A program made the position numbers and the translations under genes. Positions 1,578-63,189 of a stretch of DNA of 64,000 nucleotides are shown here, piece after piece. The stretch is taken from positions 434,001 through 498,000 of the IMG/VR virus record IMGVR_UViG_3300050122_000263; one strand, given 5' to 3'. Every line of letters begins with the position of its first letter. Positions within the stretch are counted from its first letter, which is position 1. The notes under the pieces were generated by a model, which searched no databases, was not told where the DNA came from, and saw only the letters and a program-made list of their open reading frames with translations.

Positions 1578-1603
1578 AAAGTTACCAGTTGACTGGTAAC
1601 TTT
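1578..1603. terminator. Intergenic hairpin (putative 3'-end/polyadenylation signal)
   Basis: aaagttaccagt-tg-actggtaacttt, 12-bp stem just after the stop at 1560. Confidence 0.7.
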
Positions 1604-1627
1604 AAGACATTGTCCAATAAGTAAAGA

Positions 1628-2161
1628 GTGATGGTGCATCAGACTCGAAGTATCCTTGTTATTAGCTCAGGGCTTTTGCTATTCTCAATAATCGCCGTTA
1701 TCCTTGAACTGGTACCAATAAGATCCGTCCTAGAGCAATGCAAGCGCTCGGATCAGAAGGATTTCTTTGATATGATAACAGCCTCAGCACTAATTCGTCT
1801 AGCTTTTTATATGATGTTATCTAGTTATACCCTTGTAATAGCGATTAAGGATTGGAGCATGGAAGAGCCATCAGCTGTATTAATTCGCTCTTGTTTGTGC
1901 TCAATTGTATTAGCCGCCATCGCCATGGTAGTTTCTGTGATAGTCTCTTTCATCAGCATAACCAAGGTGGCTGAGAATGATGGAGAGTGTTATATCAGAT
2001 TTATGCATATCTTCACTCAAGACATAGTGATTGAGGTAGTCTCAATCACTCTGACTATTATTGGGACTGGTATCATAATCCAACAGGTTGTTTCTATTAT
2101 CACCCAACCAGCAGAGATGCGCGAGATATCCATGGCTACAGAGATACAACAGTTACTCTAG
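1628..2161 (+). CDS. Multi-pass membrane protein, paralog of 63234..63878
   Basis: 177 aa with about 4 hydrophobic segments; ENDGECY here vs ENDDTCY in the paralog. Confidence 0.7.
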   Translation: MMVHQTRSILVISSGLLLFSIIAVILELVPIRSVLEQCKRSDQKDFFDMITASALIRLAFYMMLSSYTLVIAIKDWSMEEPSAVLIRSCLCSIVLAAIAMVVSVIVSFISITKVAENDGECYIRFMHIFTQDIVIEVVSITLTIIGTGIIIQQVVSIITQPAEMREISMATEIQQLL

Positions 2162-2174
2162 TATGCTTCAATGT

Positions 2175-2200
2175 AAAAATCCCTAATGCTAGGGATTTTT
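2175..2200. terminator. Bidirectional hairpin between convergent genes
   Basis: aaaaatcccta-atgc-tagggattttt. Confidence 0.75.
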
Positions 2201-2255
2201 TAACTTCAAGCCGTATACTCAATCTTCAGCCTTCTTGTCTCATTGCCTGAGATAA

Positions 2256-3794
2256 TCACTTCTTCTGCTCTGCAAATATGTTGGGATCAAATCCCTTGAC
2301 TGCTATGGATACGGTGCCCAGCCAAGTGATATCCTCGAAATCAGTGACTGCACCGATTGCATCATTGGGCAGCAATTTGCCAACTGCCCAGGTTGTAGTG
2401 CCTTCGTTCTGGAGAATGATGTTGCGATCGTTGGTTATGAACAGATCCCGACCTCTACGGAAACGTCTGACCTGCAACTTGAGACTAGCTGCAGGAAGCT
2501 TAGCTGCAGCGGGCGGCTCATCCACACAGCCAGGGGCATGTGTAGAGCGATATTCGTCGGGCATGATCTGAAAGCCATTCTTATAAGCGTACGACAGATC
2601 ACGCTTGCCAAGTGCTTTACATCTATCACCGTCTCGCTTAGCAATCACTGCCAGAATATTGGCCTCCTTATGCTCGACCACCAGCTGTTGTGTCTGTAAT
2701 ACGAACATATTGTCATCAGGTGAGAACATCTCAATAGCTAGATGCTTGGAGCTATGTTTGATGATACTCTCGGCTGGAGCATGTAGAGGCAGAAAATCTA
2801 ATCCCATGCCCTTGGCATCACTAATAGTTCCTAGGTCAAGAGGAAGAACCTCATCTTGATGTAGATAGCCGATAGCGGTGCGCTTGAAGCGGCCGACGTG
2901 AACAAGCAAATTGCTGTTGACCTCCTTGAAGAGGGCATGATCTGTATTATAGGGAACTAGTACAATGTCTTTCCCCTCTGTCTTAGCCTGAACACCGAGC
3001 GGAATGGTCTCAACGGTGCGAAGCTCATGCTCGATAATCACCGCCAGACAATTTGAGCAGATATAGCATGGGCCCTCCTCGAAGAGTGCTAGATAAGAGG
3101 CCGATTTGCCGCAGGGTACATTCTTGCTGTTGGATGAGAGATTCTTGACTGGGAAGCGGGCCTCCTCACGACCTTTCTTGTCATGTCTGACTGATGAGGG
3201 ATATGTGCAAAGACGCAGCTTGTTGAGCTCCCATTTGGGTGATTCGCTTTGCTTCTCGGCCTTTTCCGCCGTTTCGGTGTGGGTATTGCAATACATGAGA
3301 TGAGGAACGATTGGAAGATTGCAGTAGGTACCCACATATTGACCCAGGGTATAACTGTGAAAGCAGTGACCTGCGCCTTTCCATATACCGTTGTTTGTCA
3401 ACAGTGAGGCTGGCAATCCGGCCGGTAATGTGAATTGTGGTGGAGTTGAGGTAACTGTCTTGCTACCAATAGGCACAGGACCGTTTCTGACTGTCACCAT
3501 ATTAGCTTCACTGATAGCGGGTACTCCAGGTAATCCCATGCCGGCATGTTTCACACAATAGCATGTGCCTTCAACAGCTTGCCTTGAACATCTGACAGGT
3601 TCTTCTTCCGCCCTATGTTTTACCGCTTTGCACCAATATGGGCTGGTGGCGGGCTCCTTCTGTGCTGCTGCAATATTGATGTGTTCAAGGCAGAGGTATT
3701 TGTCCGCAAATTTGGTATCCGTACCGCAGCCACACTCGACCGATTTATCGGCGCTGGTCTTGACAATGAATTCACAGGTTCTTGTTTCGCTCAT
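2256..3794 (-). CDS. CCCH-type Zn-finger repeat protein with three C-terminal ~40-aa modules; tandem paralog of 4052..5590
   Basis: 512 aa; three C-x-C-x-C-x2-H fingers; WELNKLRLC shared with its neighbour. Confidence 0.8.
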   Translation of the reverse strand: MSETRTCEFIVKTSADKSVECGCGTDTKFADKYLCLEHINIAAAQKEPATSPYWCKAVKHRAEEEPVRCSRQAVEGTCYCVKHAGMGLPGVPAISEANMVTVRNGPVPIGSKTVTSTPPQFTLPAGLPASLLTNNGIWKGAGHCFHSYTLGQYVGTYCNLPIVPHLMYCNTHTETAEKAEKQSESPKWELNKLRLCTYPSSVRHDKKGREEARFPVKNLSSNSKNVPCGKSASYLALFEEGPCYICSNCLAVIIEHELRTVETIPLGVQAKTEGKDIVLVPYNTDHALFKEVNSNLLVHVGRFKRTAIGYLHQDEVLPLDLGTISDAKGMGLDFLPLHAPAESIIKHSSKHLAIEMFSPDDNMFVLQTQQLVVEHKEANILAVIAKRDGDRCKALGKRDLSYAYKNGFQIMPDEYRSTHAPGCVDEPPAAAKLPAASLKLQVRRFRRGRDLFITNDRNIILQNEGTTTWAVGKLLPNDAIGAVTDFEDITWLGTVSIAVKGFDPNIFAEQKK

Positions 3795-60819: not shown

Positions 60820-60836
60820 AAGATATAATCTTTTTA

Positions 60837-60860
60837 AAAAATATCTACACAGATATTTTA
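60837..60860. terminator. Hairpin downstream of fibre 2
   Basis: aaaaatatct-acac-agatattttt. Confidence 0.7.
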
Positions 60861-61070
60861 TACCAACTTCAGCTTTGTGACCCTGCACTCTGAACATCTC
60901 ATCACATAACTTTACTTCAGATGGCTCAGCTCTTATTGTCTCAGCTCCATGAAATTGTAAGGGAATGAGGTCAATACCCGATAACCCATCAAACACTCTG
61001 TGTTACAGCTGTCAGAGTCTTACTACAGATACTATGTTGGTAATTTTTCTTATTTGTGGTGATACAGTAA

Positions 61071-63140
61071 ATGGAAGAGCATACAGGGCTAGGAAGCCGC
61101 ACGGGGCTGAATCAGTCACCTAAACAGGGCTCTAATGAAGGAGAGGTTGTTATACAACCGATCGCTGGACCAGTCGGACCCCAAGGCGCGGCCGACACTA
61201 CTCGCGCAAAAGGCTTTCCAGCTCAGGTCTTTCTATGTCAAGTCATCGACTTTCAGGGCATAACTTCATGCTGCGGTCTACCGCCAATTGCTAATATCCC
61301 AATCGGAACACTGGTTCTGATCCGAGGTCCTAGCTGCTGCTCATTGTTCCGCAGAGAAGGGGCTGGATTTGTACCCGTCGACCCAGTTGAGCTCGGTCAC
61401 TGTACTCGAGGTCAACCTACTGGTCCCTGTGTAGATGGGCCAAATCACAACTTAGGTGGGGCCTTCCTCTTTCTTGACACTGTCACTTGTGTCATCTATG
61501 TCCTTGATCCCACTCATACAGGACCCTGCCTTGAGCTGTGTGCGGCTCTGCGTCTCCAGAATGTCTTCCTAACTGTTGGAGACAAGCTCTTTGACTGCTG
61601 TTCTCAGCAAATCTTTGAACTAAGAACAACTAGTGATACTGGCTGTGATGGTGAGACCGAATGTGTCTGGGCCGCTTGCTGTGCTATTGTTGGACAGACC
61701 GGACCCACGGGCCCAACTGGCCCAGGTGTGACAGGACCTACTGGTCCAGCTGGTGAGACAGGGGCAACTGGGCCACCGGGTACTCCTGGCAACACCGGTC
61801 CTACTGGAGCCACTGGCGCTACAGGTGAGACAGGAGCTACAGGTGATCCTGGAGCCACTGGCGCTACAGGAGCCACTGGACTTATTGGATTAACCGGCTC
61901 TACTGGGCCAACTGGACCCACCGGAATCATTGGATTAACCGGCTCTACTGGGCCAACTGGACCAACTGGTGTGAGCGGCCCCAGCTTCGTGGGACCCACC
62001 GGCCCCACTGGCCCTTGCTGTGCGGGCCCAACCGGTCCAACTGGACCGGCAGGACTTATTGGATTGGCTGGCCCCACCGGCCCCACTGGTGACGTCCCCT
62101 GTACCGATTCATTGGTGAAATATGAATTCTTCATTGCTGGTGAGAATCGCCCCGTTACTGGTCCTATCTCCTTCACTATCGGTGGAGTCGATATGCCTGC
62201 TCAAGGTTGGGATAAGATCACAGGCCTGGTTGACAGTGCTTTATACACCAAGGATCAAGGTATCCTAGGTGAGCAAGGACTTGGATTTGCTGCACAAGCT
62301 GCTCACGAGATCGATAATGCTCATTATATTCAGATCGATCTGGCTAACTTGATTGCCAACACTAAGCCCGGAACCACTCCCACCATTACTATTCAGAGTA
62401 ATCAGACGAATGAAGGCTTTGAACTACTTGGCTCGGCCACATCGGGGGTGGGAGTGGGTGGATCCAATCTCACCTCGCTGGGTACCCACTCTGGCACCCT
62501 TGTGATCACTGTACCTATTCCTAATTGGAGCGGCCCCGGCTCCTTTAATGACGGCACTTACCGTTATCTCTCAGTCATCGCTACTGGCACAGCGGCCCCT
62601 CCTGCTCCTGATGTACTGCTGAATTCCATCCTCTTCACAGAGTGTGCTCAGCCGGTGACTAGTACCGATTTCCTCTGGACTTACAAGACTACCACTCAGA
62701 ATGCCATCGCTGGACCAGCATTCGATAATATTCTTTTCGATCCTGCGGCTGGTGATCCAGAACTTGAGGGCTGGACTCACTCTATCACTGGGCCCTCTTC
62801 CGGTCTTTTCGTCTGCCCAACATCAGGCAAATACAAAGTTGACTTCTCCGTTTCTGTTGCCAGTGATGGAGTAGCCGGTAGGATAGCCAGTGTGCGTGTA
62901 GCTATTGATCGCGGATTTGGCCTGACTGAGATAATGGGTAGTGCTATCACAGAGAATCTCTCACCCACCGCTGCCACTCGTCTTGTGCTTGTCAACCCTA
63001 TTATCACTTTCTTACAAGCTGGTGATACACTTGCCCTGCAGTTTGCCGCCAGTTCCACCACAGTATCGATCGCACCCTCTGGACCATTGGCCGGTGAAAC
63101 TGCCACTGACGCATCTATCGTCATCATTCGTCTGCAATAA
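61071..63140 (+). CDS. Collagen-like fibre protein 3: Cys-rich N-terminal domain, GXT stalk, extra beta domain and C-terminal BclA/C1q-like domain
   Basis: GXT triplets at about 61692-62090; [17 protein letters not shown]...[11 protein letters not shown]. Confidence 0.9.
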
Positions 63141-63173
63141 CGTTCTTGCGATAATTTGAGCCTAGAGCTCATG

Positions 63174-63189
63174 AGTTTTTTAAAAAACT
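63174..63189. terminator. 16-bp palindrome downstream of fibre 3
   Basis: agttttttaaaaaact, preceded by tgagc-ctaga-gctca. Confidence 0.5.

Follow-up and report, generated by a model that had tools for sequence, protein, structure and literature searches.

Gene-end hairpins as the probable general mRNA 3'-end signal of an uncultured peat giant virus, with a few local direct repeats among them

Introduction

Why do short palindromes recur almost identically at distant points of a giant-virus genome, and why do some of them lie in direct repeats that enclose one or two genes? We address these questions in a stretch of 64,000 nucleotides (the window), which comprises bases 434001-498000 of a single 582,007-bp IMG/VR virus record, IMGVR_UViG_3300050122_000263. 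Plain coordinates are those of the window; coordinates prefixed with G are positions in the record. The original prediction proposed that terminator hairpins double as gene-capture sites, forming an integron-like array through which single-gene units are added or shuffled. Our analysis confirms the observation and supports the terminator part of that interpretation, but not the gene-capture machine. We consider it likely that the hairpins are the general mRNA 3'-end signal of this giant virus, a 'hairpin rule', and that the direct repeats are footprints of a few local duplication or insertion events, with no dedicated site-specific recombination.

Results

A hairpin follows most genes

We defined a perfect hairpin as one with a stem of at least 8 bp and a loop of at most 8 nt. 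The part of the window considered here is:

1578-63189, both strands: whole span, with 52 called genes and 53 perfect hairpins

The record as a whole holds 489 perfect hairpins, 328 of them centred in non-coding DNA, which makes up 12.6% (73 kb) of the sequence. Markov-simulated intergenic sequence yields 10-14 (about 12). Occupancy varies with the orientation of the neighbouring genes: 85% of convergent gaps contain a hairpin, 63-70% of tandem gaps and 23% of divergent ones, with all four neighbour orientations about equally frequent and median gaps of 80-138 nt. Of those in the window, 37 fall between genes: 11 in convergent, 19 in tandem and 4 in divergent gaps, plus 3 at the edges of the window. 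The hairpins lie close to the preceding gene, at a median of 30 nt past the stop codon and 100 nt ahead of the next start. When counted gene by gene, requiring at least 9 pairs, with one mismatch allowed, within 150 nt of the stop, a downstream hairpin is present at 337 of the 454 genes (74%), compared with 6% of mid-gene controls. The elements have stems of 8-14 bp and loops of 0-8 nt, spanning 16-28 nt overall, and RNA folding assigns the stems energies of -9 to -17 kcal/mol (z -2 to -7). Their placement bears out the reading of these palindromes as hairpins of terminator type at the gene ends of single-gene transcription units. The proportion of genes followed by a hairpin is flat across every 50-kb bin of the record, and the genes for PolB and the major capsid protein are included. 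Since hairpins follow genes evenly throughout the genome, core genes too, they do not mark an accessory array.

A hairpin with a 12-bp stem at 42617-42645 lies 13 nt beyond the stop of ORF 42658-43290 (minus strand). It is contained in the 5' end of ORF 41844-42734 (minus strand), which overlaps the former ORF and probably starts at a later ATG. Hairpin positions could be used in this way to refine gene calls.

The hairpins share a strand-symmetric grammar

The sequence of the gene-end hairpins follows a common pattern: (TT)AAAAA, a pyrimidine-rich and G-poor 5' arm, a loop, a purine-rich arm and TTTTT(AA). An A-run makes up the outside of the 5' arm, followed inwards by a pyrimidine-rich stretch nearly free of G. 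Tandem and convergent sites have a G/(G+C) of 0.22-0.26 in the 5' arm, versus 0.46 in hairpins of coding DNA or divergent gaps (binomial P = 4e-33). The A-runs are likewise specific to gene ends, and hairpins in 5'/5' gaps lack the grammar. The word TTAAAAA occurs downstream of 103 genes and often contains the stop codon. Because the sites are palindromic, RNA copied from either strand presents an A-run, a C/U arm, a loop, a G/A arm and a U-run in that order, and owing to this symmetry a single site can serve both genes of a convergent pair. Examples of the strand-symmetric purine/pyrimidine asymmetry in the window are 13586-13609, 14717-14740 and 30802-30828.

What might such a signal do? We propose that each gene would constitute its own transcription unit, and that the palindrome a few tens of bases past the stop may act as a general signal for termination or processing of the mRNA 3' end, with transcripts predicted to end in the hairpins. 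The record encodes an RNase III-domain protein, a 436-aa ORF at G312811-314121 that matches Ribonuclease_3 with 50 bits against a cut-off of 27. In Mimivirus the gene-end hairpins are cleaved by an RNase III-class enzyme, and Pithovirus has been reported to obey the same hairpin rule and to encode such an enzyme (PMC4402537).

Identical stems recur at distant, unrelated sites

Three hairpins of the window are formed by the arms AAAAATCCCT(A)/(T)AGGGATTTTT, and a variant of them lies near the third:

2175-2200, unstranded: gene-end hairpin, first of the three AAAAATCCCT stems (stem 11, loop ATGC; -12 kcal/mol, z -3.6), between convergent genes 1631-2161 (+) and 2256-3794 (-)
25970-25994, unstranded: gene-end hairpin whose 11-nt arms repeat those of 2175, with loop CGT; convergent neighbours 25220-25861 (+) and 26001-27470 (-)
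33327-33352, unstranded: gene-end hairpin (stem 10, loop AAACTC), directly downstream of the HMG-box gene 33362-34153 (-)
34333-34356, unstranded: one-mismatch variant hairpin, downstream of 34412-34972 (-); weak fold on the transcribed strand, -4.5 kcal/mol

The recurring stems that the original prediction had listed, including the variant, are thus all present where it placed them. Gene 34412-34972 is a tandem paralogue of 33362-34153 (38% amino-acid identity), and the variant hairpin at 34333 was probably duplicated along with it, as the sole exception among these stems. Paralogy among the genes beside 2175, 25970 and 33327 was considered and rejected, as these neighbours are unrelated.

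Across the genome, 50 pairs of hairpins have identical 8-nt arms; column shuffles and Markov models (orders 1 to 3) yield 5-19. The flanks of identical-arm pairs agree at a mean of 17.0 of 50 positions versus a background of 15.7. Distant pairs with identical arms number 45; in 36 of these both members have a loop, and none of the 36 has a loop in common. Common descent of the distant stems is rejected, given flanks at background and loops that never match. Their recurrence has the marks of a common sequence grammar or word preference and not of recombination products or copies: because the grammar is narrow, similar stems recur at unrelated sites. Recombination between shared palindromes, offered earlier to explain the dispersed paralogues, finds no footing in stems with unrelated loops and background flanks.

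Direct repeats around one or two genes exceed chance

A different picture emerges between neighbouring gaps. Exact direct repeats of at least 16 nt are found in 5 of the 449 pairs of adjacent intergenic regions and in 2 of the 448 next-but-one pairs, where about 0.1 would be expected from distant intergenic pairs of the same composition and grammar (rate 1.1e-4). Four of the seven strongest cases fall in the window, which is 11% of the genome (P = 0.004). All three repeat-bounded units of the original prediction (22041/22437, 36225/37132 and 37196/40928) are among the seven, and they are real and beyond chance. Their repeats coincide with gene ends or hairpins, with the correction that 36225/37132 is a gene end and not a hairpin. 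The fourth case, 34160/34979, belongs to the common 5' region of the HMG-box paralogues:

34100-34176, minus strand: tandem-duplication footprint, covering the 5' end of 33362-34153 and the DNA upstream of it, with 75% identity to 34919-34995 of the paralogue

Unit 1 is bounded by a 19-nt exact palindromic repeat, 22041/22437, which extends in direct orientation to 26 nt with 24 identities; the two copies bracket a 370-nt segment:

22034-22059, unstranded: left copy, containing a perfect 22-nt palindrome
22082-22414, minus strand: enclosed ORF of 110 aa, a strict orphan with no homologue and no second copy in the genome
22430-22455, unstranded: right copy, 24/26 identical with 19 exact, in a divergent 5'/5' gap that needs no terminator

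The FAD/BBE oxidase gene 20480-22024 (+) and the enclosed ORF have the left copy as their common gene-end hairpin. The interior, 22060-22436, matches nothing elsewhere in the genome; its origin as a decayed end of the FAD gene was rejected, as there is no similarity.

Unit 2 is bounded by a 63-nt direct repeat of 87% identity with an offset of 907 nt:

36225-36287, plus strand: left copy, made up of the final 60 nt of gene 35142-36284 and the A-run opening the next hairpin
36288-37131, plus strand: interior of 844 nt, with hairpin 36289-36312, ORF 36328-37047 and hairpin 37087-37113
37132-37194, plus strand: right copy, a gene-end relic that is non-coding and interrupted by in-frame stops; a hairpin follows

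Gene 35142-36284 encodes a PhyH dioxygenase with a SAP/HeH domain. All eight mismatches of the repeat lie in its first 31 nt, and the last 32 nt are identical. The enclosed ORF (239 aa) matches only its own distant paralogue in the genome and one repeat protein, and the DNA of the interior has no other copy in the genome.

Unit 3 lies immediately downstream. Its 25-nt hairpins, 37190-37214 and 40923-40947, have a 19-nt exact word in common and two genes between them:

37190-37214, unstranded: left hairpin, with one mismatched pair, following the relic gene end
37329-40838, plus strand: enclosed genes 37329-40229 and ORF 40374-40838
40921-40948, unstranded: right hairpin, a perfect 28-nt palindrome (-13.5 kcal/mol, z -4.7)

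The right hairpin is the common gene end of 40374-40838 (+) and 40958-41647 (-). The orientation of the copies is ambiguous, because the hairpins with their flanks align slightly better inverted (34 nt) than direct.

Comparable cases occur outside the window:

G574315/G579482: pair of 26 nt, identical including the loop, around two unrelated genes
G416912/G418290: pair of 61 nt including a hairpin with fold-keeping paired stem differences, around two genes
G276958/G277016 (G276958-277062): tandem gene end, the last 47 nt of gene G276182-277000 at 98% identity, just before a hairpin
G571536/G574311: terminators belonging to tandem paralogues; their stems agree, their loops do not

The segment G276958-277062 is a second duplicated gene end, comparable to 36225/37132. 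Even at blastp E = 10, no similarity is seen between the genes to which the copied hairpins belong, whether at 22034/22430, 37190/40923, G574315/G579482 or G416912/G418290.

Recombinases and alternative alleles

A six-frame search of the 582-kb record, in which the positive controls gave matches, detected no tyrosine, serine, HUH, TnpB, retroviral-type or DDE recombinase (no Phage_integrase, Resolvase, Y1_Tnp, TnpB zinc ribbon, rve or DDE_Tnp_1). The integrase profile PF00589, whose control was positive in 14/14 genomes, has no match on the record, which may lack about 38 kb of the virus; PF01797 and PF07282, for enzymes of the IS200/IS605 type, are likewise unmatched on it. On this record, the search for recombinase, HUH and TnpA proteins that the gene-capture proposal called for returned nothing. 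A miniature inverted-repeat transposable element (MITE) or other transposon with terminal repeats was rejected as well, since neither 22060-22436 nor 36288-37131 has another DNA copy in the genome.

Contigs of five peat metagenomes are 100% identical over 20400-25200 and 35600-41500 and show no joints; no empty-site or reordered alleles occur in them, and contigs hide rare variants. The relatives retrieved with the FAD oxidase, the capsid protein and a 1020-aa family protein are either the same virus at 100% or sequences at 43-48% amino-acid identity. Contigs of the nearest FAD-oxidase relatives have no gene order in common with the window.

The genome and its gene content

The record encodes a family-B DNA polymerase and a major capsid protein of the nucleocytoplasmic large DNA virus (NCLDV) type, and is an uncultured giant virus (Nucleocytoviricota) of peat metagenomes. 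Its closest capsid relatives, in a search among 5.8 billion sequences, are 43% identical, and a protein atlas places them in Nucleocytoviricota at no finer rank. The same sequence was recovered, with zero differences, from several peat metagenomes; for the contigs of five runs this refers to 20400-25200 and 35600-41500. As identical proteins are also found on a 620-kb contig, the record may be slightly truncated, with about 38 kb of the virus possibly lacking. IMG/VR labels it a 'provirus' of 61% completeness; despite that label, it looks like a free giant-virus genome. The G+C content is 46.6%, and 221 genes lie on the plus strand and 233 on the minus strand. No strong promoter motif emerged from an upstream k-mer search, and a bacterial-type promoter scan gave promoter-like sites at chance level.

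The majority of the 52 window genes are orphans. Pfam matches identify collagen-repeat, phage tail-collar, SLOG/YspA, glycosyltransferase, FAD/BBE oxidase and HMG-box proteins, together with a PhyH dioxygenase carrying a SAP-like domain. The tail-collar domain protein has 163 aa and lies at 7743-8234. A blastp family of 17 members includes the window genes 5882-7633, 58177-60819, 61071-63140 and 37329-40229; the first two match the Pfam collagen repeat, the third has the same repeats of 9-nt period, and 37329-40229 has no Pfam match. One protein of this family ends in a Peptidase_S74 (endosialidase chaperone) domain. ORFs 9890-11077 and 54073-54399 contain internal tandem repeats with periods of 12-42 nt (10554-10925 and 54120-54224, respectively) and encode low-complexity repeat proteins.

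The window sits in the paralogue-rich right arm of the genome: paralogues account for 14-18% of genes in the centre and 44-61% beyond 450 kb. Duplication-rich regions have likewise been described in Pithoviridae (PMC10664404). The boundaries of the duplications are unreadable here because the paralogues are old (24-61% amino-acid identity). A two-gene module is duplicated 3.5 kb away (44088-45272 and 47665-48973, 26-30% amino-acid identity), with one gene inverted relative to its partner. In addition, a dispersed family of non-coding repeats of about 80 nt (78-100% identity, both orientations) occupies gene-poor spots, at these sites outside the window:

G76404-76877: site of the 80-nt repeat family
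G178492-178842: site of the 80-nt repeat family
G392139-392264: site of the 80-nt repeat family
G502815-503661: site of the 80-nt repeat family

Discussion

How well does a general 3'-end signal account for the hairpins, and what weighs against it? The viral poly(A) polymerase profile PF19244 has no match on the record, in a search that had no positive control and in which the control genomes were silent too. No RNA run is listed for this virus. Identical stems are commoner than simple composition models predict, so that the grammar either is a word preference stronger than the one modelled or includes some old copies. Finally, four hairpin-limited local copies flank genes without detectable paralogy to their neighbours, and plain tandem duplication fails there. 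We nevertheless retain the 3'-end signal as the likely interpretation of the hairpins.

The local repeats would be the footprints of a few duplication or insertion events, and some genes may have been duplicated together with their terminator. Tandem duplication of a gene-plus-terminator block accounts for the hairpins of tandem paralogues: those at 33327 and 34333 belong to paralogues with a common 77-nt 5' region, and the terminators G571536/G574311 keep the same stem around different loops. Could all of the repeats be leftovers of such segmental duplications, in which everything diverged save the hairpin and some promoter or gene-end pieces? Duplicates in Pithoviridae lie mostly within a few kb of the original (PMC10664404), which fits. 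The owners of the four copied hairpin pairs are dissimilar at blastp E = 10, however, and the interior 22060-22436 matches nothing in the genome; as an explanation of the whole set, we find this doubtful. For the hairpin-limited copies around unrelated genes two readings remain, insertion at a palindrome with duplication of the palindrome's length, or local conversion between terminators. Short-patch gene conversion would have made neighbouring terminators of common grammar identical over 20-30 nt while leaving the genes unmoved. The identity ends at hairpin edges, including the loop in one case (G574315/G579482), and pairs with identical arms lie within five hairpin steps of each other more often than expected (5 versus 1.5). 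Conversion nevertheless requires a pre-existing hairpin in the 5'/5' gap at 22430 and leaves the 63-nt gene-end repeat unexplained, and we judge it decidedly unlikely.

Insertion at palindromes is compatible with a 3'-end signal and needs no recombinase. Fragile or strand-switching palindromes would attract insertions, for instance through cleavage of a cruciform or hairpin with staggered repair or through template switching in replication, giving rise to an arrangement of hairpin, unit and hairpin. The excess of seven exact repeats over about 0.1 argues for such hot spots, as do the confinement of four copies to the hairpin (or the hairpin plus about 20 nt) around genes without paralogy to those next to them, the position of the right copy, 22430, in a gap where a terminator is unnecessary, and the enclosed ORF 22082-22414 without another copy. 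A Rad50/SbcC-like ATPase is encoded in the genome, and hairpin-cleaving repair enzymes and palindromic repeats have been tied to gene capture in pithoviruses (PMC10664404); for these reasons a route through palindrome instability is plausible but unproven. Only 4-5 events are seen among about 330 hairpins, however. Surviving events must fall in short intergenic gaps, much of which is hairpin, and selection preserves hairpins while neutral flanks decay, so that repeats would land on hairpins without any causal role of these. The 63-nt repeat 36225/37132 is a gene end, the contigs of the five metagenomes show no polymorphism, and no relatives are near enough for a breakpoint test, the best having 43-48% amino-acid identity. 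Taken together, we view recombinase-independent hot spots, too, as doubtful. The more specific proposal that terminator palindromes are preferred break or strand-switch points, at which segments of one or two genes are inserted without a dedicated recombinase and leave a palindrome-length duplication, seems to us somewhat unlikely. Far below this in probability stands an integron-like system, in which the hairpins would be attC-type sites for a site-specific recombinase that inserts or shuffles cassettes. What speaks for it is the analogy alone, namely hairpins that bound single-gene units, a few of them with flanking repeats. Against it stand the lack, on the record, of every recombinase family searched for, genes on both strands in equal numbers with gaps of about 130 nt, perfect palindromes of 16-28 nt in place of imperfect attC folds of 57-141 nt, hairpins after 74% of genes including those for PolB and the capsid, and contigs of five metagenomes in which no cassette variation is seen. 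We regard such a system as extremely improbable, and the analogy as not supported.

What are the implications of these findings? With a general hairpin signal here, the hairpin rule of giant viruses reaches an uncultured peat lineage for whose capsid protein the protein search returned nothing else above 43% identity, and the grammar can help in correcting where genes start and end in this genome. The hairpin-limited repeats beside unrelated genes provide a small but statistically solid lead on gene gain in giant viruses. If insertion at palindromes proves true, genes would be gained by a structural route that needs no integron and is concentrated in the paralogue-rich arm.

Several known systems invite comparison. 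The attC sites of integrons are imperfect palindromes of 57-141 nt with conserved outer boxes and unpaired bases, and the promoterless cassettes that they delimit are co-oriented behind one promoter. Folded palindromes at the ends of single-gene units are common to both systems; here, in contrast, there is neither IntI nor another recombinase, genes occupy both strands, and short perfect palindromes extend genome-wide and include core genes. For the palindromic repeat regions M1/M2 of pithoviruses, a role as hot spots at which the genome mutates, captures genes and is rearranged has been proposed (Rigou et al. 2023, PMC10664404). These too are palindromic non-coding sequences of a giant virus, and hairpin-cleaving repair proteins are invoked there, but they are clustered, multi-copy, MITE-like repeats of about 140 nt, whereas the signals described here measure 16-28 nt, occur once per gene and have 4-5 footprints that may point to capture.

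The hairpins also recall the bidirectional intrinsic terminators of bacteria, with a stem-loop followed by a U-run and preceded by an A-run, read on both strands and serving convergent genes. The stems here differ in being AT-rich with few G-C pairs, and the polymerase is viral and of eukaryote type. A standard bacterial terminator scan found 22 sites versus 15.4 expected in 20 kb, merely slightly above chance because the stems are AT-rich. The resemblance is one of form only.

The hairpin rule of Mimiviridae was reportedly set out by Byrne et al. in 2009. It was taken up by Priet et al. (2015) and has been reported for Pithovirus sibericum as well (PMC4402537). The likeness to our virus is extensive: palindromes lie just past the stops of most genes, are shared between convergent genes and rare between divergent ones, and a gene with an RNase III domain is encoded. 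A single RNase III domain is detected here, not a tandem pair, and no poly(A) polymerase is detected (PF19244, for which the search had no positive control). Mimivirus is AT-rich, whereas the genome studied here has a G+C content near one half. The Mimivirus motif has been described as not conserved in sequence; here, in contrast, there is a clear grammar with its outer A- and T-runs and G-poor 5' arm, and the purine/pyrimidine asymmetry of the arms falls outside the published description of that rule. The hairpins of this peat virus are thus a known giant-virus feature in a new example, with a grammar clearer than usual.

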